From Blastocystis sp. Blastoise (lineage: Eukaryota; Protista; Bigyra: Opalinata): 64,000 bases of DNA. The stretch covers positions 62,001 to 126,000 of the forward strand of contig JBBPEB010000008.1 in assembly GCA_039096225.1 (NCBI GenBank), in the 5' to 3' direction. Positions 1 to 54,424 of this stretch are shown here, one piece after another. The notes beneath the pieces were generated by a model, which searched no databases, was not told where the DNA came from, and worked only from the letters and a program-made list of their open reading frames with translations. How positions within the stretch are numbered: position 1 is the first letter of the stretch; each line of letters opens with the position of its first letter. The translations under genes were made by a program, and so were the position numbers.

Positions 1-3000
1 TCTCCAATACTTATAGGCCCATTCTAAGACTATATCATTAATTTTTGATATTAAAAAGTATAAGTATCTTCCTTTGAGTTTTGAGACTTGAGATATATTA
101 TGAATAGTAGATTCAGGAATTGTCCCAGAGGCACCAAGTATAACAGTATAGTAGGAGATTTGTTTATTAGGGAAATCATGTTGTAATTTTTGTATAGCTT
201 CATCATATGAATGATCTTTAGTATGTTTCATTTCTAAGATAGTATCACGAGTTCCATCTACTTGTTCATAAGTAACACCAATTTCTACCATTCTTATTTC
301 TTTCTCACTTGTAATTATAATATCTGGACGACGATTAGCCCATTCCTCTTTATTCTTACCATCATATAGAATAGTATTCATTGATTTTTCTTGATTGACT
401 TTATAAATAGTATAAGGAAGAGCTTTTGCCAAAGATCTAGTTAAACATTCTCGTATTTCATTATGTCTTTTGCTAATCAGATCGTGTCCATTTTCATTTC
501 TAGAGATTCTAGCACAAGTAGTCATGATGTGTGTTTGACTATGTATTCTTGATTCATTTTTAGTTTTCAAACAATAAGGACATAAAGCGACAGTATCATG
601 TAGAGTAGGTTTCTTTCCTTTCGGATCTTGTCTTCTATAAGCCATCTCACCAGTATATAGGGTTCTCATTCGAAGATTCAATAAGGCACAGTATTTTGAA
701 GGATTAATATGTTTTGTTTTGTATATCCATTTGTTACACGATATATTATTATTCAAATATTTAGTATATTGCAAATAGGAGTATTCTTTCAGCATAGAAG
801 CATGTCTTATTTTCAAAGATTCATTTAATAATTTACACATCTTACGTTTCACATCTTTCGCTTCTATAAATTTCGATATACTATTATCAGTACTTCTTAT
901 TCTTATTCCAGCTCCATTTTTCGGATTATTTTCATAGTAACATATGTCCATGTTTAAAGCAACTATAGCATCAATTGCTTTTCTTATATAAGGGAAGGGA
1001 TGGTTCAGTGTAGTAAAGTCTATATCTAGAGGAATAATAGTATTATTTTCTTTCTTTGCTTTTAAGGGTTTGTTAATATTGTTGATAGATAGATTAAAGA
1101 ATACCAAATCTTTCTTTCTAGTTTCAGGGATTTCAGTAGGAATATGGCCTCTCATATAGTTTATTGGATCATTAATCACATATAGAGAATTTTGTAGAGT
1201 AGTATATCTAAGAGCATAATATAAAGTATTTCTAATATTTATATCATTTGAATTAGCCATTCTTACCAGTAGAGAAGCTTTACCAATATAGTACCTATCT
1301 AACAACGAAGTAACACCAAGTCCACCATCTCGTATTGAAGTGCTATAAAAGTCTTTAGGCCAGACAGAAGAACATCCATTCCAATTCTTAACATTATTTC
1401 TTATTAGTACATCCAGTTCTTTTATTTTAAGTATATTAGTATCACCATTTCTAGCCAAGAATTCAATACAAGGAATAATATATTGACGAAGAGTTATTAA
1501 TTTTTGATGAGGACTAATAGGAATAGTATTTAAAGAATTTATTTTTTCTTTGATTTCATCTAACGTATTCACCCAGAATTCTCTTCGTTTAGTAATGGAT
1601 TCACCCATAGGACATCCTAAATATCTTTGGATTTCAGTATCTTTAAGTAGAGTAATCACTTCATTATTATAAGTAGGAGGAGGAGGAGTATACGTAAGTT
1701 TTCTATTTCCATCATTGGAATATTTCATCGCTAAACACTTACATTTATTAACCGATAGTTTCATATGATATATATTAAGTATTTCTTTTACCTTTCCTAA
1801 AAGAACTTCCGTATCTTCTTTATTGTTAGCTAGCAGGACGATATCATCTGCATAAGCATAAGCATTACTTTCTGATATAACAATAGGATTATTAGGAGTA
1901 GTGTTATCTTTAATATTCATCATCATGGCTTGATTATTGTTCAGGTAATTCAATAAAGGATTAAGTATAATATTGAATAGAAGAGGAGATAGGGGATCAC
2001 CTTGTCTTATTCCACGCTTTAAGTATATAGGATCTGTATATGAATTTTTGGTTAATCTTATAACAGTATTAGCAGAAGAGTATAAGGATAGAATAATATT
2101 TCTGAAGTCTATAGGGAAGTTCATATATTGAAGAATTTGATGCATTAATCTTTGAGGTACCGTATCATAGGCCTTCTCCAAGTCGAGGAAAGTAAAATAG
2201 GCAGCAGTTTTAGCTCTTCTAGATAGTTTAAAGTTAGCTATGTAGTTTTGTAGTATGAAATTAAGTTCTTCACAACCAGGTATTCCAGATATAAATCCTT
2301 TTTGATATTTTGACATAAAGTTTTGTTTATTGTTTAGTTCATTCATGTAGGTAACCATTATAGAAGAAAGTATTTTTGATTCAGTATTTTGTAAAGCCAA
2401 AGGTCTCCAGTTTCCTAAGCTACTAGGATCCGATTTATTTTTGTCTAGTAGGCAAGTGATAGAGGAACTCCAAGATTTTAGAGTAATACCATTCGAACGA
2501 CATATTTCTAATATATAAGCCAATAGAGAACAAGCAGAAGAGGAGTATTTGTAAACTTCATAAGGGAGACCATTAGGACCAGGAGTACTGTTATTTGGTA
2601 AAAATTTTAATGCATGTCTAATTCTTTCATAGGTTATCTTATTAAGGGCAGGAGGATTTAGTAATTGTTTAGTATTTGATTTTATAATATCTGGAAGTAA
2701 TATATTATCTGAAGTTTCTTGTGAATCATATAGTTTCGTAAATTGTTCTTGTAAATCCTTAGAAGGTATTTCACAATATCTAGGAGTAGTTTTAGAGAAT
2801 ACTTTACTTCTTAAGAAAGCTTTAGTATTCTTATCAAATTCGGATTGTATTTTCTTAGCATCATTAATAGAAGTAATTCTTATTTTAGCTTCTTTAAGTT
2901 GGTTAATATTCCATAAGCATGATTCTATCTCATTCATTATAAGATTTAATATCTCTTTCCATTGTTCTAGAGTAAGTAGAGGAGTATTATTATTTTCATT

Positions 3001-6000
3001 ATCTTTCTGTAAGATATTTAATATATTTATTTTTAATTCTTCATCTTCATCAAAGAGTGTAATAGATTGTAGTTTATTTTTCCAATTAAGGATAGACTCA
3101 GAAAGAGTAGAAGAGATAGTATAGGATTCAGTTTCAGGAATATTAGGTAATATAGTATGATTCAAATCGTATTTTAGAGTATCTAGATTACTTTTTAGAT
3201 TATTATAGTATTTCTTTAAAGCTTCAATTTCATTATCCGTAGATTTTCTGAAAGGATTATTATCAAAGAAATCATCATTCGTTTGTTTGAAATTATTATT
3301 CATATGTATAGTGTTAGTATTATTAGTAGGAGTAGTAGTAGTAGGAGGAGGGGAAGTAGTAGGAGGAGAAGCAGTAGAAGGAGAAGTAGTATCAGTAGAG
3401 GGAGTAGTACCATTTATAGTAGTAGATCGATTAGTAGTAGTAGTAGTAGAAGGACTTAAATCCATATAGTTCTTATATTTTTTATTCTTTTTATATTTGT
3501 TTTTATTACTATAATTGTTTATAGGATGATTATAATTATTCTTTCTTCTATTATATCTATGTTGATTATAATCATGATTATTTCCAGGAATATTTTGAGT
3601 ATCATATCGATTTTGAGTATTCCCATGATTATTCTGAGAAATATCATGAGTATTCATAGCATCCGTATTATTAGTAGTATTCTGAAGATTATTAGGAGAA
3701 GAACCAGTATAGTTTTGATTTTGACCATAACCGCGATTATTTTGAGAAATATCATGCATATCCATATACTTCTTTCTATATTGATTATTCTTTCTAGTAT
3801 ATGTTTTCTTTAAGTTTCTATATTGGTTATTTGATCTATATGAATTGCTATTTCTATTTTTTCCAGCATAAGAATATTTATTTGAAGAATTCTTATCATT
3901 ATAGTTATTCCTTTGAGAAGGAGAATAACTATTATTCTTTCTGTATATAGTATTATATTTCTTAATAGAACTGTTGTTATTGAGATTATTATTACGCCAA
4001 GATCTATAAGTAGGAGTAGAATTATTATATATCCAATTATAGAGTTCATTTTGAATATAATCACATATATTATTGAAGGAATTAATCATTTCGTTATTCA
4101 TCTGTATAGTATTCGATTCATCAGAGGAGTTAGGGAAAGGAGTAACAAGAGGTATGAGTTTATCTTCTATAAATTTGTTAAATCTAATGAAACTTTTCCA
4201 ATTTCCTAATTTATGTATAGCCATGGAAGAAAGTCGTCTTTTAGGAGTATTATCTACTTTGATAGTTTTTGAGAATTGTATAGTTTTCTGAATATTAATA
4301 GGAGAGTAAGTAGAAAGGAGATCTTCAGTATTAGGAATTCGAGGAGCCTTTATATAATCATCATATTTTGATTTATTCTTAGTATTCTTATTTCTATTTC
4401 CTTTTTGTGTAGAATTCTTTTTATTCTTTTGAGTTGAATTATTTGTAGAAGTATTTTCTTGAGTATTAGAAGATTCAATATCCATCATAGTATCATTATT
4501 AGTATTCATAGTAGTAGAAGCTATTTCTTCTTGTATTTCCATAGTATTCATAGGAGTATTTGTTTCAGAATTACTCATGTTTTGATCTATATCTATATCA
4601 ATATCTATAGTATTATTATTGTTTAAAATTTCATTCGTATTGATAGGAAGAGGAGTAGTAGTAGTTTCTATAGTAGTAGTAGTTTCTGTAGTAGTCTTCT
4701 TAGATCCATTTATGTCTTTTTGAGTAGAATTAAGTGGAGTAAAATTAAAATCTATATTCGAGAGACTTATATGATTTTCAAGAGGAATAGGAGAATTCAT
4801 AGGAGAGGTAGTAGTTGAAGTGGATGTAGAAGAAATATTAATTATCGATTCATCAGAAGATACATCATAGTATTCATTTCGATTCTGTATTGTAGTTGTA
4901 TTATTCATTTGAGTATTAGTTTCATCAAGATTAATAGTATTTCTCTTATTTTGTGTATTTTCTTCTTCATTAGTTATAGATGTAGTAATCTCCTTGTTTG
5001 TAGTAATATTCATAGTATTATTTACTAAATCCTTATGGATAGATTCCTTTTGCTGATTAATATTATTTGTATTAGAATCGATAGTATTCAAAGTAGAAGG
5101 AATACTATTAATATCTATATCTAATTCCATATCTATATTTTCTATAGAACTATTAGGAGACAATTGAGTATTATTTATAGAAGGAGAAGATATAATAGTA
5201 TTGTTTATTATATTGGTATTTATTTGATCTATATTCATAGAAGAAGATAAGTTTGTTGAATCTATATTAGAAGGAGATTCTATAGATATAGGAGATTCTA
5301 TAGTAGAAGAAATATTGACTGTAATAGGAGATTCTATAGATATAGAAGATTCTATTATAGTATGATCATCTGGATTTATAGTAGTATTCATGATAATAGG
5401 AGTATCAATATTATTTGTAGTATTTGTAGAAGAAGAAGAAATATGTATAGGAATAGAATTAGAATTAATTATAGAATTTGAGATAGAAGGAATAGTAGGT
5501 TCAATAGTAGTTATAGAATCAGAAGGAACAGGAGATAAAAAGGTACCCATATTAGTATGTGTATTATCCTCAATTTCATTTTGTATATAGTTATTTGTTG
5601 TATCACTTGGAGTTATTCTTTCTTGTATAGGGATTTCATTTTGTTTCGCTACTTCATTTATTGGAGCACTAGAATTTCTATGTTTATTTGAATAAATATT
5701 TCTGAGAGTTCGTAGTAAGTAGAACAGTGTATTCACACTTGACTGAGGGAATAACATGGAGAATGCTTTTTGGCGGGTAATTCTTTTTTGAATTCTAGGC
5801 CTATTTTTTCTTTTCTCGTAGATAAACATTAAAGTGAAGTGATTTATAAATTCCTTTAAGGATTCTATATTATTCCATTTCTTTCCATTTTTATGTTTTT
5901 TTATTGTGTTATAACCAATTAGAAATTCAGGTTTTGCCGGGAAAAGCCAATTAAATTTAGTAGGAAAATCTTTAGGAGGAGAAGTAATAGTATATATATT

Positions 6001-7611
6001 AGTAGGAAAAGAAAGAATAAATTCATTATTTTCAATAGTATTTAGTATAGTTTCATTTGTAGGAATCTCATTTTCATCTATTATATCATTAGGAGTAAGT
6101 ATAGGTATTTCTATATTAGAATCAGAATTCGTATATATATCTTGATCCTCTTGTTCGGTATTATTTAAATTGATAGAAATAGGTTCATCTTCAGAGGATA
6201 AAAGGGAGGTAGTTTGTATAGAAGGATGAATAATTTCATTTCCAATAGGAGTATTATTTGTAATTGTAGCAGTATCTATTATAGTAGTATTTGAAGATGT
6301 AGATAAAGAAGGAGATAGTTCTAGTGTAGGATTTCTTGCCCAAGAAGGAGGATTCGTATCATTTGGGAATATTCTATTGTGTAGTAATTGACTAAGTGTA
6401 GGAGTAGGAGGAGAATCAGAAGATTCAGGAGAATTTATAGCATCAGGAGAGTTTATAGAATCAGAAGAATCCATAGAAAAAGAAGAATCCATAGGAGCAG
6501 AAGAATCAAGAGCATTAGAAGAAACCATAGAAGCAGAAGAATAAATAGAATTAGTAGAATCAACAAAAGCAGAAGAATCAATAGCATTAGAAGAATTCAT
6601 TAAATTAGTAGATTCAGAAGTATTTAAAACAGTAGAATTAGATTGTGTAATGTTAACAGTAGGAATATTTTCATGAGTAGAAATAATAGATAAATTAGTA
6701 GATTCGTTAGTAGAATTGTTCAACAGGGATTCTTTTGTAGAGGACACATTTTCAGGAGTAGATAACGCATTAGAAGAAATAATAGTAGTAGAATTTTCAT
6801 TAAGAGTGTTTGTAGCCACCGAAATAACCATAGGTACATCATTTTGTTGATTTAGAGTCGTATTTTGTGTAGGAAGTCCAAGATTGGTAGTAGATTTTTG
6901 AGTAGATTTCACGTTTTGTTTAGGATCATCATAATCAATCCAAATGTTTACATTAGTAGACCAAGACTTAGCAAAGGCATCAGAAGACCAACCAGTAGAA
7001 GACCAAGATTCATCTTTCTTTTCAGAAGTATTTTCAGTAGAAGGTTTCAAAGGTTCAGAATTCACTTGTAGAGAAGAGTCAAGAGGAGGGTTCAAAGGAG
7101 TATCCACTCTTTTTCGAATAGACTTGTATTGTGTAGATATCGGAGACATAATTCGTTTCTTAGCCGAGGAAGTAGTATCTACGTAGAGGGTATCACTTTC
7201 AGAAAGTACCCAGTTAGAAGAATTGTTTGTAGTTGTAGTAGTTGAACCAGTAAGAGATAAGTCTATTAATTCTTTAGTATTTAAAGAATAATCTTGTTTA
7301 TTTTGAGGATCTATTTTAGTAGTAGTAGAATCACGGGAGAACTCGGAGTTTTGTGGGATTTCAAATCCGGAAAAAACCAATTTTGATCTTGGATCACCAT
7401 TTTCATCATAATTTTTTTGTTTTTCGTTTTTCTCATCTTCCACAGATTTAATTCGTTTCTCGTTTATCTGTAAACTGTTCTCATCGCTAGGGCTAGGAGC
7501 AGAAGAAGACGCCAGGTTCGTAGACCCAGATTTATCTCTGATCTTCAGATCAACTTGGAGTTTTGACTCCGGAACTTCACCGTTGTTACTAAAATGGATT
7601 GCTGATTGCAT
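1..7611 (-). CDS. Single ORF of an RLE-type non-LTR retrotransposon: long low-complexity N-terminus, reverse transcriptase, CCHC knuckle and restriction-like endonuclease; 3' end runs off the window
   Basis: ATG at 7611 (MQSAIHFSNNGEVPES...). The same frame gives PGPNGLPYEVYK, NWRPLALQN, QKGF, FLDLEKAYDT (~2170), RGIRQGDPLSPL (~2000), YAYADD (~1850), CPYC...HIMTTC...KRHN (~580-460) and RRPDIII...MVEIGVT (~330-270), and is still open at position 1 (...EWAYKYWR). The ORF track lists no stop-terminated ORF in this frame, consistent with one continuous ORF. Confidence 0.95.
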   Translation of the reverse strand, partial: MQSAIHFSNNGEVPESKLQVDLKIRDKSGSTNLASSSAPSPSDENSLQINEKRIKSVEDEKNEKQKNYDENGDPRSKLVFSGFEIPQNSEFSRDSTTTKIDPQNKQDYSLNTKELIDLSLTGSTTTTTNNSSNWVLSESDTLYVDTTSSAKKRIMSPISTQYKSIRKRVDTPLNPPLDSSLQVNSEPLKPSTENTSEKKDESWSSTGWSSDAFAKSWSTNVNIWIDYDDPKQNVKSTQKSTTNLGLPTQNTTLNQQNDVPMVISVATNTLNENSTTIISSNALSTPENVSSTKESLLNNSTNESTNLSIISTHENIPTVNITQSNSTVLNTSESTNLMNSSNAIDSSAFVDSTNSIYSSASMVSSNALDSSAPMDSSFSMDSSDSINSPDAINSPESSDSPPTPTLSQLLHNRIFPNDTNPPSWARNPTLELSPSLSTSSNTTIIDTATITNNTPIGNEIIHPSIQTTSLLSSEDEPISINLNNTEQEDQDIYTNSDSNIEIPILTPNDIIDENEIPTNETILNTIENNEFILSFPTNIYTITSPPKDFPTKFNWLFPAKPEFLIGYNTIKKHKNGKKWNNIESLKEFINHFTLMFIYEKRKNRPRIQKRITRQKAFSMLFPQSSVNTLFYLLRTLRNIYSNKHRNSSAPINEVAKQNEIPIQERITPSDTTNNYIQNEIEDNTHTNMGTFLSPVPSDSITTIEPTIPSISNSIINSNSIPIHISSSSTNTTNNIDTPIIMNTTINPDDHTIIESSISIESPITVNISSTIESPISIESPSNIDSTNLSSSMNIDQINTNIINNTIISSPSINNTQLSPNSSIENIDMELDIDINSIPSTLNTIDSNTNNINQQKESIHKDLVNNTMNITTNKEITTSITNEEENTQNKRNTINLDETNTQMNNTTTIQNRNEYYDVSSDESIINISSTSTSTTTSPMNSPIPLENHISLSNIDFNFTPLNSTQKDINGSKKTTTETTTTIETTTTPLPINTNEILNNNNTIDIDIDIDQNMSNSETNTPMNTMEIQEEIASTTMNTNNDTMMDIESSNTQENTSTNNSTQKNKKNSTQKGNRNKNTKNKSKYDDYIKAPRIPNTEDLLSTYSPINIQKTIQFSKTIKVDNTPKRRLSSMAIHKLGNWKSFIRFNKFIEDKLIPLVTPFPNSSDESNTIQMNNEMINSFNNICDYIQNELYNWIYNNSTPTYRSWRNNNLNNNSSIKKYNTIYRKNNSYSPSQRNNYNDKNSSNKYSYAGKNRNSNSYRSNNQYRNLKKTYTRKNNQYRKKYMDMHDISQNNRGYGQNQNYTGSSPNNLQNTTNNTDAMNTHDISQNNHGNTQNRYDTQNIPGNNHDYNQHRYNRRKNNYNHPINNYSNKNKYKKNKKYKNYMDLSPSTTTTTNRSTTINGTTPSTDTTSPSTASPPTTSPPPTTTTPTNNTNTIHMNNNFKQTNDDFFDNNPFRKSTDNEIEALKKYYNNLKSNLDTLKYDLNHTILPNIPETESYTISSTLSESILNWKNKLQSITLFDEDEELKINILNILQKDNENNNTPLLTLEQWKEILNLIMNEIESCLWNINQLKEAKIRITSINDAKKIQSEFDKNTKAFLRSKVFSKTTPRYCEIPSKDLQEQFTKLYDSQETSDNILLPDIIKSNTKQLLNPPALNKITYERIRHALKFLPNNSTPGPNGLPYEVYKYSSSACSLLAYILEICRSNGITLKSWSSSITCLLDKNKSDPSSLGNWRPLALQNTESKILSSIMVTYMNELNNKQNFMSKYQKGFISGIPGCEELNFILQNYIANFKLSRRAKTAAYFTFLDLEKAYDTVPQRLMHQILQYMNFPIDFRNIILSLYSSANTVIRLTKNSYTDPIYLKRGIRQGDPLSPLLFNIILNPLLNYLNNNQAMMMNIKDNTTPNNPIVISESNAYAYADDIVLLANNKEDTEVLLGKVKEILNIYHMKLSVNKCKCLAMKYSNDGNRKLTYTPPPPTYNNEVITLLKDTEIQRYLGCPMGESITKRREFWVNTLDEIKEKINSLNTIPISPHQKLITLRQYIIPCIEFLARNGDTNILKIKELDVLIRNNVKNWNGCSSVWPKDFYSTSIRDGGLGVTSLLDRYYIGKASLLVRMANSNDINIRNTLYYALRYTTLQNSLYVINDPINYMRGHIPTEIPETRKKDLVFFNLSINNINKPLKAKKENNTIIPLDIDFTTLNHPFPYIRKAIDAIVALNMDICYYENNPKNGAGIRIRSTDNSISKFIEAKDVKRKMCKLLNESLKIRHASMLKEYSYLQYTKYLNNNISCNKWIYKTKHINPSKYCALLNLRMRTLYTGEMAYRRQDPKGKKPTLHDTVALCPYCLKTKNESRIHSQTHIMTTCARISRNENGHDLISKRHNEIRECLTRSLAKALPYTIYKVNQEKSMNTILYDGKNKEEWANRRPDIIITSEKEIRMVEIGVTYEQVDGTRDTILEMKHTKDHSYDEAIQKLQHDFPNKQISYYTVILGASGTIPESTIHNISQVSKLKGRYLYFLISKINDIVLEWAYKYWR

Positions 7612-7619
7612 GAGGATAT

Positions 7620-7640
7620 AAAAAAAATGTAAAAAAGAAA
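7620..7640 (-). terminator. Pol III oligo-T terminator of the tRNA
   Basis: TTTCTTTTTTACATTTTTTTT immediately 3' of the tRNA. Confidence 0.7.
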
Positions 7641-7712
7641 CGCCTGATAGGGGGATCGAACCCCTGACCACTGGATTAAAAGTCAAGCGCTCTACCGCTG
7701 AGCTAACCAGGC
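7641..7712 (-). tRNA. tRNA-Lys (anticodon UUU)
   Basis: GCCTGGT TA GCTC AGCGGTA GAGC G CTTGA CTTTTAA TCCAG TGGTC AGGGG TTCGATC CCCCT ATCAGGC G; 72 nt, intact A and B boxes, one U-C mismatch in the anticodon stem. Confidence 0.93.
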
Positions 7713-8070
7713 TCCATGTTTAAGTTAGTTTTAGTGTCATAGACGTGACTAGTGGAAAAAGATGTTATAAAGAAAGCGTGTTATTATGGCAATGTTTTAT
7801 TTATGATTTTTAGTGTTTGTTGAGTTGTGAAACTAGGTTTATTTGTGATTATGGAAATTTTATGATGTTTTGGAGATATTCTTACACAACCGCGGATAAA
7901 ATATTTTTGACAAGGATATTTTTGAATTCGTCATGAAACTATCTTTTTGATAAAATTATTGAAATAGTGTTGTTTATTCGTTGTAGAGTATATAATAATC
8001 TATATTCTTCTTGCTACAGGAATTCTGTGAATATACAGTATCGTTTAGTTGATACAATTGCTTTTTATTT

Positions 8071-17310: not shown

Positions 17311-20300
17311 AATATAATAATACATTATTATTTCTCTTATTTTCTTTCTTTATATATATATATATTTTCATGTTTTTAATAAGTTTTTTTCATTATATAT
17401 ATTATCATTTTTTAACAGGTTTAAAAATAGTTTTGTAAATTTATTGTTTAAATATGTTTATGATATTAAAATATTATCAACATAATTATTACATAATACT
17501 TTTAATCATAACAGAGAATTAATGTTTTCCCAACATTATGTTATTATCATAAGAAACTACTCTATGTCACTTTATATAATAATAAAATTTTAACTATCAA
17601 AAATTAACAAAAGTTTCATATTCTTTTATAACAATTGTAGCTTTGTAATAAAGTTTCATTTTGGAAAGCAATTTATAAAAATATCATTTTAAACGAAACA
17701 ATATTTGAAAAATATATTGATATATATATAAGAAATATGATTAATAATATATTAGTAAACAAGTAAAAAATATATATTTTAATCAATGTTTAATATGATT
17801 ATTATATAACAAAACTAATAGAATATTATTATAATATTAATCATGAATAATTATTAAAAATAAAATAAAAAAATAATAATAATATATATATATATGAAAT
17901 TATAAACAAAAGCATTATAACGTAACAGGTTTTTCAACTTTAACAGTTTCGATTTCAGGTGTTTTTTTATGAGGTTGTAATTTCTTTTCTTTCTTTTCTT
18001 TCTTTATATTTTTTAGAACAAATATTAATATCAAAAGTATAACAAGAATGACAATAACAACAATAAGAATAATTGTTGTGACTGAAAGAGAATTACCTGT
18101 TGATACTATTTTTCCATTAATTGAAGTATTAGTAATATTTTGAAGATTAGAATCATTACTTGTTTTACATGCTTTAAGAAGAATAGAATCAATACCAGTA
18201 AATAAAGTATTTATATCATTCTTTATATTATCTTCATCAGCTTGATTAGCAGTTATTCTTACATTAACTGAAACACCATCAGTATAAGTAGATATACTAG
18301 AAACACTAATAATCTTTACAGCAGATGAAGGAATAGAATAACTAGTAAGTGATTGAACAATAAGTGTTCTAAATGTTTCAGTAGTAGAAGGAGTATTAAA
18401 AGCAGTTTCAGTTAATCCTTCAAGTTTTATAGGAACATCAATAAATATTTTATTATCACCAGGATTCTCATTTGTAATAAATATATAACAATCAGAACTA
18501 TCAGCAATTTGCCAAGAAGCAGTACCAACACCTGTATTTTGACAAACACGACTTTGAATACCTAATTGACCAGAAGGACATTCAATATAAGCAGTTATAT
18601 CTCTTTCTGTAATAGGCCAATTATCATCAGAAGGACAATAAACAATACTTATCGTAATAGTAATAGTAGCAGTAGATTCTCCTCTTGCATTAGAAGCAGT
18701 AATAGTATAACTATTAGAAGAAGCTGAAGTAGGAATACCATATATAAAGCCATTTTGAGTATTAAATATTAATCCATCAGGAAGAGAAGGAGATATAGTT
18801 AAAGGATTAAGATTACCACCTGTAATAGAAGCCATAATTGGAGTAATAATATCATTCTTATATCCAATAATAGTATTTGTATTATAAGAAATTGAAGGTA
18901 TCTTTAATTCACAATTATTAATAATATCTCCCCAAACAGCAGGATAACCAAGTTTACATAATCTTGTTCTAAATCCTTCATAATTAATAGGATCTTCACA
19001 AGGTAAAGTAACTTGGTTACCAATTTCTGTAATAGGCCAAATAATATCATCAGGACAATTAGCAATACTAATAATAATAGTAATAGTAGTAGTATATTCT
19101 CCTCTTGAATTAGATATAGTAATAGTATAAGTATTAGAAGAATCAGAAGTAGGTGTACCATATATTTGACCATTTTGATTATTAAGTATTAATCCATCAG
19201 GAAGAGAAGGAGATATAGTTAAAGGATTCAAATTACCACCTGTAATAGAAGCCATAATAGGAGTAATACCAATATTTTTATATCCAGTAATAGTAGTAGT
19301 TGTATAAGAAATCGAAGGATTCTTTAGTTGACAATTATTAACGGCATCTTCCCAAACAGCAGGATTTCCTAATAAACATAATCTTGTTCTAAATCCTTCA
19401 TAATTAATAGGATCTTCACATGGTAAAGTAACTTGCTCTCCAGCTTCTGTAATAGGCCAAATATCATCAGAAATACAATTAAAAGTACTAATAATAATAT
19501 TAATAACAATATTATCTTCTCCTCTTGTATTAGATACAGTAATAACATAAGAACCAGAAGAAGAAGAAGTAGGTGTACCATATATTTGACCATTTTCAGT
19601 ATTAAATACTAATCCATCAGGAAGAGAAGGATTAATAGTAATAGAATTCAAATTACCACCTGTAATAGTAGCATTAACAGAATTAATAGCAACATTCTTA
19701 TAACCAGTAATAGTTGTGATATCATATATAATTGAAGGCATTTTTAGTTGACAATTATTAATAATATCTCCCCAAACAGCAGGATATTCAAGTTTACATA
19801 ATCTTGTTCTAAATCCTTCATAATTAATAGTATCTTCACATGGTAAAGTAATTTGTTGACCAGCTTCTGTAATAGGCCAAATATCATCAGAAATACAATT
19901 AGAAGCACTTATCGTAATTGTTATAGTAGCAGTAGATTGACCTTTTGAATTAGAAATTGTAATAGTATAAGTATTAGAAGAATCAGAAGTAGGAATACCA
20001 TATATTTGACCATTCTCAGTATTAAATATTAATCCATCAGGAAGAGAAGGAGATATAGTTAAAGGATTCAAATTACCACCTGTAATAGTAGCAGCCACAG
20101 GAGTAATAGCATTATTTTTATTACCTATTATAGTATTAGTAGCATATGAGATAGTAGGTAATAAAAGTTGACAATTATTAATAATATCTCCCCAAACAGC
20201 AGGATCTCCTCTTATACATAATCTTGTTCTAAATCCTTCATAATTAATAGTATCTTCACAATCTAAAATAGCTTGTTCTCCAGCTTCTGTAATAGGCCAA

Positions 20301-21137
20301 ATATCATCAATAGGACAACTACTATCTTTTATAGTAATAGTAATAGTAGCAGTAGATTCACCTCTAGGATTAGAAATCGTAATAGTATATAATACAGAAG
20401 AAGAAGAAGTAGTAGTAGTAGGTGTACCATATATTAATCCAGTAATAGAATTGAATAATAAACCATTAGGAAGAGAAGGAGATATAGTTAAAGGATTCAA
20501 ATTACTTCCAGTTATAAGAGCAGTAATAGGAGTAATAGGAATATTTTTATATCCAATAGTTGTAGGTACTGTATATATTATAGTTGGCATTCTTAATTCA
20601 CAATTATTAATAATAGTATCCCAAATAGCAGGATAACCAAGTTTACATAATCTAGTTCTAAATCCTTCATAATTAATAGGATCTTCACAAAGTAATGAAG
20701 TTTCTTGACCAATTTCAGTAATAGGCCAATTATCTTCAGAAATACAAAATACTACATCAATAAGAATCAAAATAGTAGTAGTAATAGAACCAGCAGTATT
20801 CGTAGCAGTGATAGTATAAGTAGTAAGAGCAGAATTAGTAGTAGGTGTACCAGAAATCATACCATTAGAAGGATTAATAGTAAGACCATTAGGAAGAGAA
20901 GGATAAATAGTAAAAGTTAATTCAGCACCAGTAACAGTAGCAGGAATAGAAGAAAAAATATTTTTATGTAAAGTAAAAGGAGAATCAATATAAGAAAGAT
21001 CAGAAGGAGCAGTAAGATAACATAAATCTTGTTCATCACCAAATACACCAGCAGTACATAATCTTCTCTTAACACCAAGATAACCATTAGGACATTCTTG
21101 GAATGAATAACCACCTTCAACAGCAGGCCCCCAAATA
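16549..21137. repeat. Left arm of a 4.59-kb inverted repeat
   Basis: Mirrored coordinates sum to 53173 (17915+35258, 16886+36287, 20451+32722, 20705+32468), so no net indels are seen. Confidence 0.95.
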
Positions 21138-24100
21138 TCATCAGATACACAAGAGGAAGGAGTATTAGTAATATATAAACCAAATTCAGATAATTGAAAA
21201 TATCCATCACCACAATTATCACTATCAAGAGAAGTATTATCACACTCAGTAGCAATAAATCTATAAGAATTATAAGGTTGAGAAGAATAGAAACCATAGG
21301 AGAGTGTTTGTCTATATTTAGTAAAAAATTGTTGGTATTCATGATCTAATAAAGTCCAAGTAATACCATTATCATTAGAACCTTCAATTCTCCAACCAGA
21401 AGGAGATCTTTGATTACACTCATTACCACTAATAATCTTATAATGATTAATAAATTCTTTACGACCATTATTGAAAGTATATTGATAAATAGCACCAACA
21501 CATCGTGGACCACTAAGAACCTTTGTATAAATACTATTATCAAATAACATATCAGTACCTTCAGAATCAGTCTTTTCAATATCAGACCAAGCAACACCAT
21601 CAGTTACTCTGTATTCACCAGAAGGAATAAAAGCAACAAAACAAGTGAAATCATTAGTAGCAGGAAGAGTATCTTTCTTATGTATTTCAACAGCTATAAC
21701 ATTAGTACCAACAACAAGAATAGGATTAACAAGTGTAGAAACAGAACTTGTAAATACAGCACTAGAAGTATATTCAGCAGTAGCAGCAGTATTATAATTA
21801 ATAGTACCAGTAGGCATATTAATTCTTCTGATTTCATGACCATTAAGATAAACAATCATACCAGCATAAGTACTAGCACCAATATCAATACCAGCATAAG
21901 CAGCATCAACAGTAGAAAGAGTAAAAGTAGTTCTATAATATTGAGTAGTACCAGTAGGAACAGGTAAAGATCCAGCAATACCAGAAGACCAATCAATATC
22001 AGAGAAAGTAGCAGTATTCCAATCAGAAGGAGCTTCAATATCATCATTTAAGTATTTCCAAGCAGCACTAGTAGAAACAATTCTACCAATATTAAGAGTA
22101 ACAGTCTTAGGAGATTCACCTATAGCAAGAGAACCAGAAACAAGAGCAGTTGTACTATCTTCAACAAATACAGAATAAGTACCATCACCCCAACCATTAT
22201 TCTTACTATCCGATAAAACTAAAGAATAAACGCCAGTAGCTCTACAATAAATGAAATCTTGTGTATAATAGTTAATAGAAGTAGATCTTGAATCAATAAC
22301 AGTACCAGTAGAATCCTTAAGAGTCCAAGAAGCTTCATTAGCATAAGTAGAGAAATAGAAAGATAATTTGAATAAGTTATTAGGATAAGAACAAGCAATT
22401 ACAGAGAAAGTAATAGTAGTAGTAACAGGAGTACCTTGAAGACTTTTAGCACTAATAGTATATACAGTAGGAGATTGAAGTAGAGTTGGAATACCATTGA
22501 AATAACCATTAGAAGAATCCATAGAAAGACCAGTAGGAAGAGCAGGAGAAATAGTGAAATCATAATAATGTTCAGAAGAAACTAAAAGAGCAGGAACAGG
22601 AACACTCTTATAAGCAACAAGATCAGAAGGTGTGAAACTGAAATCAGGAATAACAAGAGATTCAATATCTTCAATTAAGAATTCCCATTCAGAGAAAGCA
22701 TATTTATTTTCAGCTTGAATAACAACAGCTTTAGTAACAGCAATCTTATAATTAGTATAAGCTTGAGTAGAACCAAGAGCATAGAAACATTTTTTTTGTT
22801 GTCTTTCTTTCCAAGAATTATTAGTTTGAGAAGTAATAGTAGTCCAAGTAGAACCATCCATAGAACCATAAATAGTCCAATCAGCAGGATCATAATTAGG
22901 AGTATCTCTGTTAGAATAAATACAATATTTATTCATATAAATAGCTCTCTTATTATTAAATTGAACGGAAACCCATTTTTCACTTACAGAATCATGAATA
23001 GGAGTAATCCAACGAGTATAAGGATTAGAATCAAAAAGATTAGCAGGATTACCATCAGAGAAAACACCACTAGAAGTATAACTACCACCAGAAGAATTTT
23101 GAATGACATTAGAATCACCAAGAAGATGGAATAAACCATCAAAATCAACATAATAAGAGCCACTGCCACGATTAACAAGAGCAATAGCTATAGTAACACT
23201 ATTACCATTAGAAAGAGTAGTCATAGGACCCGATACTGATCTCCATAAGAAAGAAGAATCACCATCAGTAGCAACAGTAGTTGTAGTAATTTCACCAGCA
23301 GCAATATTATATCTATAGACTTCATTACCATTTACATAAATAACACAGCCAGCTTTAGATTTAAAGAATAATTCCCAACCAACCATATTCGTCTTAGAAA
23401 TAATAGTAAAAGTACTTCTAAGAAGAATAATACTTTGAGTAACAGAAACAAGAGGATTATAGTAAAGTTGAGACCAAGATACATCAGAGAAAAGAGCAGT
23501 CTTCCAATTAGCATCAGTAGGAGCACCTTGTTGATATCTCCAAGCAGATTGAGGAGCAAGATCAAGACGAGTATTAACATAATAAGTAGTAGTAGTACCA
23601 GCTAATAAATACATACGAGCAATTCTATGTTCAGTAGTAAGATCATATTTTAATGAAACATCAAGATAAGCACCTTTTTCCCAACCATCATTATTATCAT
23701 CGAAAAGTACAAACTTCCAACGACCAGCAACTTGACATTCATTTAATACTTGATTCGCACCATTATTAACACCAGTAACAGTAATAATTTGAGTATTATC
23801 TTCAGAATAAATAGCAACACGTTCATCTTTAGAAGTCGATTTATTCACTTTAGTAATAACTACTTGAGCCATAGCAGGTTGTTGACAAACAATAAAGCTA
23901 ATAGTCATAGTAAAAGTAGTAGCAGCATTAGTAGCACCATCAATAGCACTAATAGTATAAGTTTTAGTGGGTGAAGTTGTAGTTACAGAACCATAAATAA
24001 TACCATTAATAGAATCAAGAAATAATCCAGTAGGTAAAACAGGAGTAATAGTATAAGTATGAATACCACTTGAAAGAGGAGCAACAGATATAGCTACATT

Positions 24101-25943
24101 AGTATAGATATTAAGAGTACTAGAAGGATATTGGAGACCAGGAGCAACAAGAGATTGACTATTTACAAAAGTACGAATTTCAGCTAATTGAGTAATACTT
24201 TTGCTATAATTATTCAATAGATCTAATTTAATTTGATTAAAAGATTTTCTATTCGAAGGAATATTAAATATATAATTAGTACTTCTAGCAGCAAATTTGT
24301 TATTAATAACATGGTCCAAGAATATCCAGGTAGCACCATCATCTTCAGAACCATAGAACTTCCATTCTCTAGGATCTTGTCCATTATAATCATTACCAGA
24401 AGTAATTTGATAAGCATTAAACCAAGTTTTAGATCCATTAGGAAGAGCAATAGTAATAGTACTAGCAGTAGCTTGGAAATAATATTTAGTAGAATCAGAA
24501 TTATCAGCAACATTACCACAAATTTCACTTGTAGTAGCTGCTTCAACAGAACAAGTAGCAGTACCACCAGAAGTAACAACATCACCAGCTAGAAAAACAA
24601 TTATGATAATTTATATATGAATATAATATTTTTAATAGATTATAATAGATATCATTGAATAAAAATAGATTTATAGTAAAATATATATATGTATATATAT
24701 GAATATAATAATAATATACTAGTAGATGAAATAGTAGTAGCATAAGCATCAAAGACATCAGCAGTAGTTAATTGAGAAGAATGAGAGTGAACTTCAACAG
24801 CTACAGTTAAAGAAGTACCAGATGTAATATAAAGAGAAAGAGGAAGAACAATTCTATATTTATAATTATAATAAATATATATATATAATAGATAAATTAT
24901 ATATTTACACTTTCCAAGTAGCATCAGTTTCAGAAGTTAAAGAAGCAGTATTAGAATAAGATACACTATATATAATATATAATTATTTTATAATTATTAT
25001 ATATATGTTTATAAATAGAAAAAAGTGATATATATGTTGTATATAAATAAACAAAGAACACTTACATAGGTAATCCAACACGAGAAGCTTCAACACCATT
25101 TATATAAAGAACAAAGCCAGAATTTGTTTTAACACCAAAACGAAGAGCATAAGCAGCAGCATCAGAAATAGAAGAAGTATATCTATAATAACGAGTAGTA
25201 GTAGAAATAGCAGGGAAAGCACCAGGAGCAAGAGGAGTCCAAGCAGCATCAGCGAATGATATTTGAGTCCAAGAAGTACCAGTTTGAGCAGTAGTAGAAG
25301 TCTTCCAAGTAGCACCAGGAGGAATAGAAAGATTCACTATATAGAATTAATATTATTTAATTATGAATGAAATAATAATTATTATTATTATAAGTAAAAA
25401 AGAAATAATCATATACAAGTGAATTGTTGTAATTTAGGAGCTTTAGCAAAAGCTTCACCACTATTGAGTCTTGCAGTTAAGAAGGTGACTCCATTATAAT
25501 TAATATAAAGATAAGCACCAGTAGACCAACCATCTCCATAACTAAAATGAATATATAATTATTATGATTATTTTATTAGAAAATGTATTAATTATGTAAA
25601 AAAAAATCTTATAAATATAATCAATTACATACCTATCGTACATAGCAAGAGTATAGACAGTGTTTAATTGAAGACAGACATCATATTCCTTGGATTTAGA
25701 GCTATCAGCAGAAGTACCAGCTCCTTCATGGACAAGAGTTCCAGTTAAATCACTACCTTGAAATATTTTCCATGATTCTTCATAAGCATAAGAACCATAT
25801 GTTCTCTTAAGAATAAAAGGTAAACTAGGAGCAACACATTCCGATTGAACTATATGTTCGTTAATAGTCAAAAATAAAAATGTTATAAATATACCTAAAG
25901 ATATCAATCCTAAAATACTAATAAGGTCAATGAATTGTCTCAT
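17915..25943 (-). CDS. Large type-I membrane surface protein A: signal peptide, 3 x [DGW module + jelly-roll + F5/8C discoidin-like] with He_PIG Ig domains, 7 HRM-like/6 He_PIG stalk repeats, SEA-like domain, TM, Lys-rich tail; about 7 exons
   Basis: 2134-aa track ORF plus upstream exons (MRQFIDLISILGLISL; KRTYGSYAYEESWKI; YGDGW; TRYYR...YINGVE; REWKFYGSEDDG). LPxGLxxxxxxGxIxGxPT repeats; C-terminal IILIVVIVILVILLILIFVL-KNIKKEKK. Confidence 0.88.
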
Positions 25944-27564: not shown

Positions 27565-30500
27565 ATGAAATCATTCATTGTTTGCTTATTTATTGCTTTA
27601 GGTATTTAATTATAGTTATGAATCATGTGAGCATACTAATTGTGTATATATAGCTGTTGCACAAACATGTATATCTCCTAAGATGATTGTCAACATTAAA
27701 AGAACTTACAAAAGTTCTGCTACTCAAGAAGGTATTCAAATTTGGCAAGGTAATTACCAAACTGGTACTTTAATTGGTGAATGGAATGGTAATGGACATG
27801 ATAATACTATTCAAACTTATTCTCTCTGTTTATCTTCTACTTTACATACCCTTGTTGCTACTGATGGGTATATTTTTTTTTATACATAAGAATTAATAAC
27901 GTTTTTCATAGTGCTAAGGATGGATGGTATGATGGTTCTATTTTTGAAATTGTTACTAGATCTGGTGTTGTTATTCTTAAGGGTACACTTGATAGTTATC
28001 AACAAAAATTATTCACTTTCTATCGTAAGTTTTTATTTAAAACAAATTTTATTTTTAATTCACCAAATAATCTTCTCTTTCTTTAGCTGCTTTTTCTATA
28101 AAATCTACTGATTCTTGGAAATATTCTGCTGTCGCTCAAAGTGATAATCAATGGACTGCTGCTGGTTTTGCTGATTCTACTTGGACTTCTTATGCTCCTG
28201 GTTCTTTCCCTGAAGTTTCTTCTATTACTAGATATTTCCGTGCTACTGCTAGTGTTCCTTCAAATAAGAATAGTTTTGCTCTTGTAGATTGTGGTGTTTT
28301 AAGTAAGGATGGTGTTGCTATTTATATTAATGGTCAAGAAGTATATCGTCGTAATATTCCTACTGGTGCTTCTGGTAGTACTCCTGCTACTACTGTTGAT
28401 GCTGTATCTGCTTACAGACGTGTCACTTTCCCAGTTACTTCTTCTTTCCTTTCTGGTTCTACCGTTACTATGGCTGTTGAAGTTCATGGTGCTTCTGCTA
28501 CTCCTGTTGCTGAAGATTTCATGGGTATTTTAATCTTTGTTTATGGTCCTTCTGTTTCTCGTAATATGGATTTCACTGTTAATGCTGAAAGACCTGCTGA
28601 TTATTCTGGTGAACCTGTTGGTAATGCTTTTGATGGTGATATTCAAACTAAATGGTATATTAACCCTCTTCCTATTTGGGGTGAAATAAGATTCAATAAT
28701 GGTAGAAGAGAATGGGTAAATAGATATGTTTTAACTGTTGGTAGTTTTGGTATTTATCGTAGACCTACTTCCTGGAAGATTTTTGGTTCTAATGATGGTA
28801 CTAATTATGATCTTCTTGATGCTAGATCTCATTTTGATTGGGAAGGTACAAGACTTGACACTATGTTTGAAATGAATACAAATCAAAAGTCATATGAAAT
28901 TTATAGAATTCAAGTTTTAACTTCTGGTGGTACTGATAGTGAAATTGCTGAAATTCAATTCTATGCTACTACTAATGCTTATGTTACTCCTTCTCTTTCT
29001 TATGGTACTACTACCGTAAGTCTTATTGCTAATATGGATAGTAAACAATTAACTCCTACTCAAAATGGTTTCCAAAACTTTGCTATTAGTCCTGCTCTTC
29101 CTGCTGATGTTGGTGCTACTTTTGATCCTGTTACTGGTGCTATTACTCTTATTCCTACTGCTGTTATTACAGCTGCTCAATATCAAATTACTGCTTCTCA
29201 TGCTGTTACTGGACAAAGCTATACTACTTCTGTTATGATTAGTGCCACTCTTTGTCTTTCTCCTAATATTCGTTTCGATTTATTCCAACAAGTTGGTAAA
29301 GCTGGTACTACTGCTGGTGATGCTGAAACTGTTTCTGTCTTAAATTCTGCTGGTACTCAAATTTTCACTTCATCTCTTAGACCTACTGATTATACTGATT
29401 ATAATGAAAAAACCTATAAATTCTGTCAAGCACCTGGTATTTATGTTTTTAAATTAACTGCTGCTTCTTCTGCTGGTTTCTCTACTGCTTCTTATGTTTC
29501 TGTTGATATTTACAGAGCTGATGGTTCTAAATTAGTTGCTTCTAGAAGAAAACTTCTTAATAAGAGTAGTGATTCTTTCAATGAAGATATTTCTTTCAAT
29601 TTACCTACATCTACTAAGATTTTAACTGGTGTTACTTCCATTCCTGCTGGTTGGAATACTCTTTCTTTTGCTGATTCTGCTTGGGCTACTTATGTTAGTG
29701 AACCTGCTATGACTTCTACTAGTAGAATTGTTCTTGTTAGAAGTACATTTACTGTTACTCCTACTTCTGATACTCAAGGTTGGCAACTTAATTATAGAAC
29801 TAATGCTGGTACTATTGTTTATTTAGATGGTACAGAAATTATTCGTTTCCAAACTACTGAACCTGCTGGTACTACTCTTTCTACTACTTCTACTGCTAGT
29901 GCTAGTGACTATTCTTATGCTTGGAGAACTTTAACTGGTGTTATGTCTCAATTAACTGCTGGTTCTCATGTTTTCAGTATTGCTATGATTGCTAAATATA
30001 ATTCTTTTGCTACTGATCCTATTAATTTCGATTGTTTCCTTCGTTTCTTAGCTGATTCTAATACTAATTCTAGAACATGGAATATGGATAGCAAGCAATC
30101 TTCTGTTGTTTGGGATGATTCTAAAGCTGATAAATTATTTGATTCTAATTATAATACTCGTTTTGCTACTTGGTTTAGAGCTTCTAATCCTGCTCCTCAA
30201 TGGGGTGCTGGTAATTTAGAAGCATTATCTTTTGAAGTATTTAATAAATATTGTATTGTAAGTGGTTGGGATGCTCCTCAACATGATCCTAAGAAGATTA
30301 CTCTTTCTGCTTCTACTGGTAGTTGGGATGAAATTGCTTTTGAAATTATTGATGCTCAAGAAGACATTGTATTTGATGGAAGATCTCAACGTATTTGTTT
30401 CTATATGCCTACTGTTACTAAAGCTTATAATATTTTCAAGATTTCTGCTCTTGAAACTAATGTTGCTCCTCCTGATAATGATAGATTTTATCTTGCTGAA

Positions 30501-33500: not shown

Positions 33501-35258
33501 GCTACTATTACAGGTAGTAATTTGAATTCTATTACTATTAATCCTTCTCTTCCTGATGGATTAGTATTTAATACTGAAAATGGTCAAATATATGGTACAC
33601 CTACTTCTTCTTCTTCTGGTTCTTATGTTATTACTGTATCTAATACAAGAGGAGAAGATAATATTGTTATTAATATTATTATTAGTACTTTTAATTGTAT
33701 TTCTGATGATATTTGGCCTATTACAGAAGCTGGAGAGCAAGTTACTTTACCATGTGAAGATCCTATTAATTATGAAGGATTTAGAACAAGATTATGTTTA
33801 TTAGGAAATCCTGCTGTTTGGGAAGATGCCGTTAATAATTGTCAACTAAAGAATCCTTCGATTTCTTATACAACTACTACTATTACTGGATATAAAAATA
33901 TTGGTATTACTCCTATTATGGCTTCTATTACAGGTGGTAATTTGAATCCTTTAACTATATCTCCTTCTCTTCCTGATGGATTAATACTTAATAATCAAAA
34001 TGGTCAAATATATGGTACACCTACTTCTGATTCTTCTAATACTTATACTATTACTATATCTAATTCAAGAGGAGAATATACTACTACTATTACTATTATT
34101 ATTAGTATTGCTAATTGTCCTGATGATATTATTTGGCCTATTACAGAAATTGGTAACCAAGTTACTTTACCTTGTGAAGATCCTATTAATTATGAAGGAT
34201 TTAGAACAAGATTATGTAAACTTGGTTATCCTGCTGTTTGGGGAGATATTATTAATAATTGTGAATTAAAGATACCTTCAATTTCTTATAATACAAATAC
34301 TATTATTGGATATAAGAATGATATTATTACTCCAATTATGGCTTCTATTACAGGTGGTAATCTTAATCCTTTAACTATATCTCCTTCTCTTCCTGATGGA
34401 TTAATATTTAATACTCAAAATGGCTTTATATATGGTATTCCTACTTCAGCTTCTTCTAATAGTTATACTATTACTGCTTCTAATGCAAGAGGAGAATCTA
34501 CTGCTACTATTACTATTACGATAAGTATTGTTTATTGTCCTTCTGATGATAATTGGCCTATTACAGAAAGAGATATAACTGCTTATATTGAATGTCCTTC
34601 TGGTCAATTAGGTATTCAAAGTCGTGTTTGTCAAAATACAGGTGTTGGTACTGCTTCTTGGCAAATTGCTGATAGTTCTGATTGTTATATATTTATTACA
34701 AATGAGAATCCTGGTGATAATAAAATATTTATTGATGTTCCTATAAAACTTGAAGGATTAACTGAAACTGCTTTTAATACTCCTTCTACTACTGAAACAT
34801 TTAGAACACTTATTGTTCAATCACTTACTAGTTATTCTATTCCTTCATCTGCTGTAAAGATTATTAGTGTTTCTAGTATATCTACTTATACTGATGGTGT
34901 TTCAGTTAATGTAAGAATAACTGCTAATCAAGCTGATGAAGATAATATAAAGAATGATATAAATACTTTATTTACTGGTATTGATTCTATTCTTCTTAAA
35001 GCATGTAAAACAAGTAATGATTCTAATCTTCAAAATATTACTAATACTTCAATTAATGGAAAAATAGTATCAACAGGTAATTCTCTTTCAGTCACAACAA
35101 TTATTCTTATTGTTGTTATTGTCATTCTTGTTATACTTTTGATATTAATATTTGTTCTAAAAAATATAAAGAAAGAAAAGAAAGAAAAGAAATTACAACC
35201 TCATAAAAAAACACCTGAAATCGAAACTGTTAAAGTTGAAAAACCTGTTACGTTATAA
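27565..35258 (+). CDS. Large type-I membrane surface protein B, paralogue of A; 4 exons
   Basis: ATG at 27565 (MKSFIVCLFIAL), three short introns at positions equivalent to the first three of gene A, then the long exon containing the 2262-aa ORF; same domain order as A. Confidence 0.9.

Positions 35259-54384: not shown

Positions 54385-54424
<40 letters not shown>

Follow-up and report, generated by a model that had tools for sequence, protein, structure and literature searches.

We examined a 64,000-nucleotide stretch of DNA from Blastocystis sp. Blastoise (contig JBBPEB010000008.1, here C10, positions 62,001 to 126,000), at the left end of which a very long retrotransposon open reading frame (ORF) begins directly behind a tRNA-Lys gene. 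This whole stretch is called the window (C10:62001-126000). The assembly comprises 33.3 Mb in 34 contigs, and positions are window coordinates unless a contig name precedes them. The host genome has a G+C content of 15-34% in 2-kb windows, proteins rich in Asn, Ser and Thr (N/S/T-rich) and short GT..AG introns, a composition and gene style reminiscent of dictyostelids. The element and its target gene occupy the following positions (nt, nucleotides; aa, amino acids).

7641-7712, minus strand: intact tRNA-Lys(UUU) gene, the sole tRNA called by ARAGORN in the window
7641-7664, minus strand: segment X, GGGGTTCGATCCCCCTATCAGGCG, the last 24 nt of the tRNA, copied 3' of each element
7612-7640, minus strand: T-rich leader of 29 nt, TTTCTTTTTTACATTTTTTTTATATCCTC, between the tRNA 3' end and the ATG
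7609-7611, minus strand: ATG of the element ORF
1-7611, minus strand: window part of the element ORF, 2537 codons open to window base 1
7557-7570, minus strand: hairpin GGAGTCAAAACTCC, 41 nt inside the ORF, from junction alignments and a fold
1615-2433, minus strand: reverse transcriptase (RT), Pfam RVT_1, E 5.1e-33
514-582, minus strand: CCHC zinc knuckle CPYC..H..C (aa 2344-2366, regular-expression scan), upstream of the nuclease
112-474, minus strand: restriction-like endonuclease (RLE) of the PD-(D/E)xK type, with motifs RHN, RRPDIII, VEIGV and K..KDHSY

The original prediction, made from the letters of the window, had placed the tRNA-Lys 3' end at 7641 and the ATG at 7611 and had described an RT-RLE ORF of at least 2,537 codons. 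ARAGORN and the translation agree with all of these positions, and the RVT_1 match together with the CCHC and RLE motifs confirms the nature of the protein. The ORF runs for 31 codons beyond the window to a TAA at C10:61905-61907, giving a full length of 2568 codons; the product corresponds to database protein P0121 (2568 aa). Left of the window, C10:52484-62000 holds these last 31 codons, an 830-nt 3' untranslated region (UTR) and a second tandem copy. The element is thus about 8.57 kb long with a single ORF. Its tRNA neighbor at 7641-7712 scores 64 bits against the Rfam tRNA model (gathering score 29), and a U.C mismatch in the anticodon stem recurs in all six tRNA-Lys(UUU) genes of the genome. 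Since no further gene with a UUU anticodon loop of similar shape turned up, the genome appears to rely on this mismatch variant.

Among solved structures, the best relatives of the element protein are R2 proteins (9nl2, E 2e-41 by phmmer over about 500 aa; R2Bm 8gh6, E 4e-29), while L1 ORF2p matches at E 1e-21. The CCHC knuckle is kept in an alignment with most relatives and with a second family described below. Six residues of the RLE (P, D, I, K, Y and G) are invariant in all eight aligned sequences, that is, the element and seven relatives, and its motifs align to RHN/RKPD/VDV of the R2 nuclease as the second, weakly scoring domain of the R2 match. The element ORF has no Pfam match to an APE or RNH (RNase H) domain. 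The element lacks long terminal repeats and has a precise 3' junction at one target sequence. On these sequence features, it is an RLE-type (R2-supergroup) non-LTR retrotransposon.

The N-terminal part of the protein is less familiar. Its approximately 1500 aa (window ~2900-7611) are N/S/T-rich and include one Cys, according to a scan for Cys and low complexity, with two less repetitive blocks at aa 520-690 and 1100-1200. In a genome search, the second family matched this extension at 29-33% identity, within aa 249-686. A motif scan of the 1500 aa found no zinc finger and no C2H2-type pattern. The region matched no Pfam domain even at E 10, neither the conserved block nor the second globular stretch gave a credible match, and BLASTP of the conserved block against database proteins P0001 and P0123 found none.

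The genome contains six identical tRNA-Lys(UUU) genes, and a looser anticodon-loop pattern adds none. Five of them (on C10, C13, C14, C29 and C33) are occupied by the element at equal spacing and in the same orientation, with the same leader and ATG; the sixth, at C1:374804-374875, is empty. The upstream flanks of the five occupied loci are mutually unrelated, and since the tRNA-element arrangement nevertheless recurs at all five, it is not a product of chance. The predicted link to tRNA-Lys therefore proves specific: when upstream tRNA and spacing were tabulated over the copies, they were the same at the five loci.

The insertion point itself lies inside the gene. All 11 element 3' ends located by genome search sit where 24 nt of tRNA come next, and the junction, ...GGCTAACACTT followed by X, is identical in each of the 10 that were read directly. 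The element end abuts tRNA nucleotide 49 (canonical position 50, the second T-stem base), 2 nt before the B box GGTTCGATCC, and X spans the T stem from its second base, the T loop with the B box, and the 3' acceptor strand. At the inner junction of an array, GGGGTTCGATCCCCCTATCAGGCG sits between the 3' UTR end GGCTAACACTT of one copy and the leader and ATG of its neighbor. An element's 3' junction marks the first-strand nick in target-primed reverse transcription. Because all element 3' ends abut the last 24 nt of the tRNA, the nick falls within the T stem, not in the 3' flank of the tRNA, where the original prediction had looked for the target.

At the far ends of the arrays, X continues into unique flanks. 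The comparison of empty loci with the element's 3' flank, proposed with the original prediction, was made for the one empty gene: over 349 nt, the trailer of the C1 gene and the far-end flank of the C10 array are 99.7% identical. Sequences after X at far ends or native sites differ from each other at once or soon after X (C33, ATTTCTTTTTATC; C10, TTTCTTTTTTATTTTT; C29, TTTCTTTTTTACATTTTTTATTTAAA). The leader is identical behind the tRNA at the five loci and at inner array junctions. Because these 5' junctions are the same at five loci while the far-end and native flanks differ, the leader must be borne by the element. Its T6 and T8 runs form a putative RNA polymerase III (Pol III) terminator for the rebuilt tRNA gene.

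The same 24 nt also precede each copy, so the gene at the head of an array is complete. The tRNA at 7641-7712 is therefore a regenerated target: its first 48 nt belong to the native locus, and the duplicated segment makes up the remaining 24 nt. The earlier idea that the element carries a tRNA as its 5' module holds in a limited sense: the leader, and probably the 3' part of the tRNA, travel with the element, but the upstream two-thirds of the gene belong to five native flanks. Taken together, we consider it likely, with good confidence, that this is a young, transcribed RLE element that inserts site-specifically inside tRNA-Lys(UUU) genes and rebuilds an intact gene upstream of itself.

As a separate observation, C1:374600-375200 and C10:51910-52483 have the downstream 349 nt in common and unlike upstream flanks, which points to a duplication or exchange between C1 and C10 with its breakpoint in the tRNA or the array.

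A genome search with the C-terminal 1000 aa found 11 copies at 98-100% identity (two each on C10, C13 and C29, three on C14, and one each on C33 and C23). Where a contig has more than one copy, these form head-to-tail arrays with a period of about 8.59 kb. Eight copies make up a near-identical subfamily (~100%), with seven intact ORFs and one frameshifted ORF at the head of the C14 array. Where arrays are mixed, the near-identical copies adjoin the tRNA and the diverged copies are distal; the latter are only 55% identical over the N-terminal 700 aa (roughly the N-terminal third) and have variant leaders. Copies iii and iv carry one extra A precisely at the tRNA/leader boundary. Each new copy would enter the intact gene at the array head, which would put the youngest copies first. 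Judging from the order seen, the arrays grow by new insertions into the intact head gene, with the youngest copies next to the tRNA.

Several older or damaged copies were seen along the way. Array ends just beyond C13:636217 and near C15:722079 hold 5' stubs of older elements, in which a fragment of the tRNA and a diverged leader precede no more than 70-85 nt of ORF, and which stop at or just past the conserved hairpin; on C13, such a stub is all that is left at the far end. In the third copy of the C14 array (C14:679293-696851), similarity is lost directly after the stop codon and the 3' UTR end returns about 11.8 kb further on; a nested insertion is likely. The copy at C23:740728-746727 matches a locally built reference only from its position 4051 onward, roughly 3860 nt past the ATG, with an unrelated repeat end upstream and a degenerate further copy behind it (790-aa open frame).

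A second family (family 2), with 45% aa identity to the first (family 1) in the RT-RLE region, targets tRNA-Phe(GAA). It occupies six of the seven identical tRNA-Phe(GAA) genes, among them loci on C23 (C23:69972-80040 and C23:238358), C15 and C4, and it too forms arrays; the empty gene is at C25:44575-44647. Behind its 3' ends come the final 22 nt of tRNA-Phe. The family 2 leader reads TAATTTTATTTTT, whereas the native trailers at the empty gene and at two array ends start with ATTTC..., so the duplication is exactly the tRNA part and this leader, too, is element-borne. Some family 2 loci share upstream flanks (C23:69972 with C23:238358, and C15:482873 with C15:752962). In L033, one of the pieces covering the C23:69972-80040 locus, an old family 2 stub is interrupted at positions 625-1030 by an insertion that resembles a DNA transposon and has 'TTGCAAAATACTTTGG' repeats and a long terminal hairpin; Rfam gave sub-threshold matches to microRNA precursors for the hairpin at 920-1013.

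The nearest database proteins are only about 31% identical. A quick RT tree, built on database hits without Repbase NeSL, Utopia or LIN references, groups families 1 and 2 (support 100) as sister to P0014 plus P0001-3 (support 94). The contigs of P0001, P0003 and P0014, which belong to other assemblies, open with a tRNA 3' end, GTTCGAGTCCCCCGGTGGGCGA, and a T run, and one sister-clade contig closes with the decayed remnant of a T arm and, behind it, another leader. In families 1 and 2, the nick precedes the B box by 0-2 nt, and in the decayed sister-clade junction it is at or next to the B-box start, which suggests that the B-box region is part of what is recognized. On the P0014 contig, at about 330-420, we also noted a Cys box resembling that of ubiquitin-specific proteases (GNTCYINSFLQ), near the N-terminus and upstream of the RT.

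The hairpin GGAGTCAAAACTCC near the start of the ORF is unchanged across all subfamilies although nearby codons diverge, and family 2 has an equivalent, GGAGTTCAAACTCT, at the same position. An Rfam scan found no family matching the hairpin at 7557-7570. Its conceivable roles include those of a promoter, a processing signal or a signal bound by protein.

Transcription was assessed in a public run, X1, which contains 86% of the sampled sequence words. Its contigs skip three GT..AG introns of a neighboring gene, and the run is therefore RNA. X1 contigs tile the element over 3000-7605, and the listed pieces do so without a mismatch (the compared stretch began at 3000). Depth is zero at 7728-7924, upstream of the tRNA at the C10 locus, and one contig spans the tRNA and the flank upstream of it at C33. 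When folded, the 3' UTR end with X (z -0.5) and the first 161 nt (z +1.1) were no more stable than shuffled sequences, and the notion of a tRNA-like tail or structured leader was dropped on that ground.

Some observations weigh against a young, site-specific element that rebuilds its target as described here. The tRNA part is identical in all copies, which makes an element-borne X indistinguishable from an exact 24-nt target-site duplication. Unequal crossing-over could likewise give identical neighboring copies. We found no 5'-truncated insertion at a tRNA, the sole shortened copy (on C23) having been cut by another repeat. Among the X1 contigs listed, the RNA stops at 7605, 6 nt inside the ATG, and none bridges tRNA and ORF; these contigs show neither strand nor true RNA ends. 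Finally, Rfam searches of the 5' region, the junction and the 3' UTR at E values up to 1 gave no ribozyme, other RNA family or processing signal; these searches used Rfam models only, which a divergent ribozyme could escape.

How the element RNA's 5' end and the 5' junction are made is a question in its own right. Since the leader is copied with the element, the template RNA begins at or upstream of the first base after the tRNA. We tentatively favor a co-transcript model with homology-guided, R2-like 5' joining. The template RNA would be co-transcribed with the rebuilt tRNA and would carry tRNA sequence at its 5' end. Target-primed reverse transcription would start from the T-stem nick, the end of the complementary DNA (cDNA) would pair with the upstream half of the target gene, and the paired end would then prime the second strand, as has been proposed for R2 RNAs that retain 28S sequence. 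The 24 nt and the trailer-like leader would have been captured once and propagated with the element since then. All 11 occupied genes (5 Lys and 6 Phe) have uniform full-length 5' junctions, and the co-transcript model accounts for these, as well as for the trailer-like leader of family 1, without coincidence. There is precedent in R2, whose RNAs, cut upstream in the 28S sequence, give uniform 5' junctions, and in the R2 of earwigs, which has a propagated 22-bp copy of the downstream target at its 5' end (PMC3774820). Such a transcript would more likely be made by RNA polymerase II, from a start at or near the tRNA, than by Pol III, and RNase Z cleavage possibly gives the element RNA its 5' end.

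The chief competitor is a pair of staggered nicks, the bottom one in the T stem and the top one at the tRNA 3' end, so that the 24 nt (22 nt in family 2) would be a true target-site duplication. The element RNA would then start at the first leader base, either through an RNase Z cut of a tRNA-element precursor or at a start site of its own. Flanking duplications are known in RLE elements, with 20 bp given for reptile Utopia in the relevant part of PMC4640811 and 126 bp for R9 as cited in PMC13580325. In both of our families, the element-specific sequence begins right after the discriminator base, which is the RNase Z site, and the extra boundary A in copies iii and iv resembles a junctional addition. 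That A may, however, be an ancestral trailer base. The stagger would also have to stop exactly at the tRNA 3' end in both families (24 and 22 nt), a double coincidence even though a longer duplication would be harmless, and the resemblance of the family 1 leader to a native trailer (common form ATTTCTTTTT) is easier to explain by co-transcript capture. We regard staggered nicks as possible, and rank them below the co-transcript model.

A bolder extension of the co-transcript model, which we hold to be rather unlikely as matters stand, is that tRNA gene and retrotransposon are transcribed and processed as a single unit. One precursor starting at the rebuilt tRNA would give both a functional tRNA-Lys and the element RNA, whose tRNA part would guide gene-restoring integration; this could involve RNase P/Z-type processing or use of the uncut co-transcript. 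If true, the tRNA for AAA, presumably the most frequent Lys codon given how AT-rich the genome is, would be encoded for the most part by genes that are partly retro-copied chimeras kept alive by a parasite. The system would also be a eukaryotic, RNA-based counterpart of the bacterial integrative elements that bear a replacement tRNA 3' end.

Insertion past the tRNA, no more than about 30 nt from its 3' end, would make the 24-nt tRNA-like piece and the T run the 3' tail of the element, and the repeat unit can indeed be written either as X, leader and body or as leader, body and X. In target-primed reverse transcription, however, pairing of the RNA 3' end is with the target on the downstream side of the nick and not on its upstream side, and such a tail would have to copy exactly the target's upstream sequence in two families with different tRNAs (24 nt of Lys, 22 nt of Phe). 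Moreover, from the tRNA end onward, what follows the last X in the C10 array is 99.7% identical to the empty C1 trailer, as would be expected if this X were the target's own. We judge insertion behind the tRNA to be very improbable.

The original prediction had suggested that Pol III read-through and RNase Z cleavage could give the element RNA its 5' end; in full, Pol III would transcribe the whole element from the tRNA promoter and RNase Z would release that RNA. This would parallel the transport of R2 on Pol I transcripts, and the absence of RNA depth at 7728-7924 means that any co-transcript at this locus starts close to the tRNA. Against it stand the T runs: a T6 at +5 and a T8 at +14 (both within 21 nt of the tRNA end), a T6 at +265, and runs of T5 or longer numbering five in the ORF and five in the 830-nt 3' UTR. 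The five in the ORF match the expectation from codon shuffling (5.8), whereas host ORFs are more depleted. T-run depletion was considered as a signature of Pol III transcription and rejected, host ORFs being at least as depleted. We know of no precedent for an 8.6-kb Pol III transcript. With T runs after the tRNA, in the ORF and in the 3' UTR, we see very little chance that Pol III reads through the element.

Spread of one ancestral tRNA-element block by segmental and tandem duplication, without any site specificity, would fit the upstream flanks that some family 2 loci have in common and could make identical neighbors tandem duplicates, but it is barely credible given five tRNA-Lys loci that are unlike in upstream and far-end flanks, arrays that combine subfamilies 55% identical in the N-terminal third, and a second family and sister clade with like architecture at other tRNAs.

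Elsewhere in the window, a MULE transposase with a SWIM finger is encoded on the minus strand at 54389-56245. Two ORFs of 2134 aa (17918-24319, minus strand) and 2262 aa (28470-35255, plus strand) contain seven He_PIG Ig-like repeats and HRM-like matches; an F5/8 type C match was found only in the first of them (17918-24319).

RLE elements specific for tRNA genes have been named before: NeSL-1_TV at tRNA-Pro, LIN15_SM at tRNA-Arg and LIN25_SM at tRNA-Glu (Kojima & Jurka 2015, in the part of PMC4640811 that deals with them). Like the Blastocystis element, they combine an RT with a C-terminal RLE and insert into one tRNA gene species. Their hosts are Trichomonas and a planarian, and the report on them in that part of PMC4640811 is brief; its description, by which alone we compare them, gives no junction details and speaks of no rebuilt gene, head-to-tail arrays or near-full occupation. 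The N-terminal zinc fingers of the NeSL/Utopia comparison are absent in family 1. The long target duplication at both ends is shared with two further RLE elements, namely R9 of rotifers (126 bp, as cited in PMC13580325) and reptile Utopia (20 bp, in the passage of PMC4640811 concerned). Those elements target 28S and U2 small nuclear RNA genes, respectively, and the passages that describe them do not mention a restored functional gene.

Like R2, the element has one ORF that combines RT, CCHC and RLE; its 3' junctions are precise and lack poly(A), and its 5' junctions are uniform. A short piece of downstream target stands at its 5' end, as the propagated piece does in earwig R2 (PMC3774820). There are differences as well. 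The target is a tRNA gene, with all copies at tRNA-Lys, and not the R2 site of 28S rDNA. Neither a zinc finger nor a Myb domain is present at the N-terminus of the protein, where 1500 aa include one Cys, and its ORF is more than twice as long as that of R2, whose solved chains have 1114-1390 aa. No ribozyme like that of hepatitis delta virus was found with Rfam in the 5' region, junction or 3' UTR. Lastly, R2 inactivates the 28S unit that it enters, but here the target gene is restored by the duplication.

Retrotransposons of dictyostelids have also settled at tRNA genes, and the TRE elements among them carry an APE endonuclease. According to Spaller et al. 2016 (PMC5006619), TRE5, TRE3, DGLT-A, Skipper-2, NLTR-A and NLTR-B insert at a distance of 2-400 bp from any tRNA gene, on its upstream or downstream side, and presumably recognize the Pol III transcription complex. 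In that survey, none of the tRNA elements is of the RLE type, and the one R4-like fragment that it reports, Pp_NLTR-C, is not tRNA-associated; NLTR-A and NLTR-B have an RNase H domain behind the RT (PMC5006619). The Blastocystis element resembles them in its setting, a compact AT-rich genome in which tRNA genes serve as safe havens and nearly all copies lie at tRNA genes. It differs from the TRE and NLTR elements in having an RLE nuclease and no APE or RNH match, and in cutting inside the coding sequence of one tRNA species.

That RLE elements can be specific for tRNA genes is thus already known (PMC4640811, in the part cited above). What is new is the rebuilt target gene with an element-supplied terminator, together with arrays that grow from the intact gene, two tRNA gene families that are nearly saturated, and an N-terminal region of about 1500 aa without a zinc finger. 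These features raise the questions of how an RLE protein without zinc fingers or Myb domain reads a 70-bp gene, how the 5' junction becomes so precise, and whether the tRNA gene acts as a promoter or processing signal. Site-specific RLE elements are in development for transgene insertion, as noted in the portion of PMC13580325 that bears on this, and nature's own example of an insertion that restores its target offers a helpful precedent for their design.

For the organism and its elements, the finding concerns coexistence. In compact genomes, the survival of a retrotransposon depends on safe landing sites, and RLE elements in multicopy RNA genes are taken, in the relevant section of PMC4370867, to break the copy that they enter, as R2 does its 28S unit. 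The elements described here cut inside a tRNA gene and yet leave behind a complete gene with its own terminator, and this has allowed them to take over five of the six tRNA-Lys(UUU) genes and six of the seven tRNA-Phe(GAA) genes.

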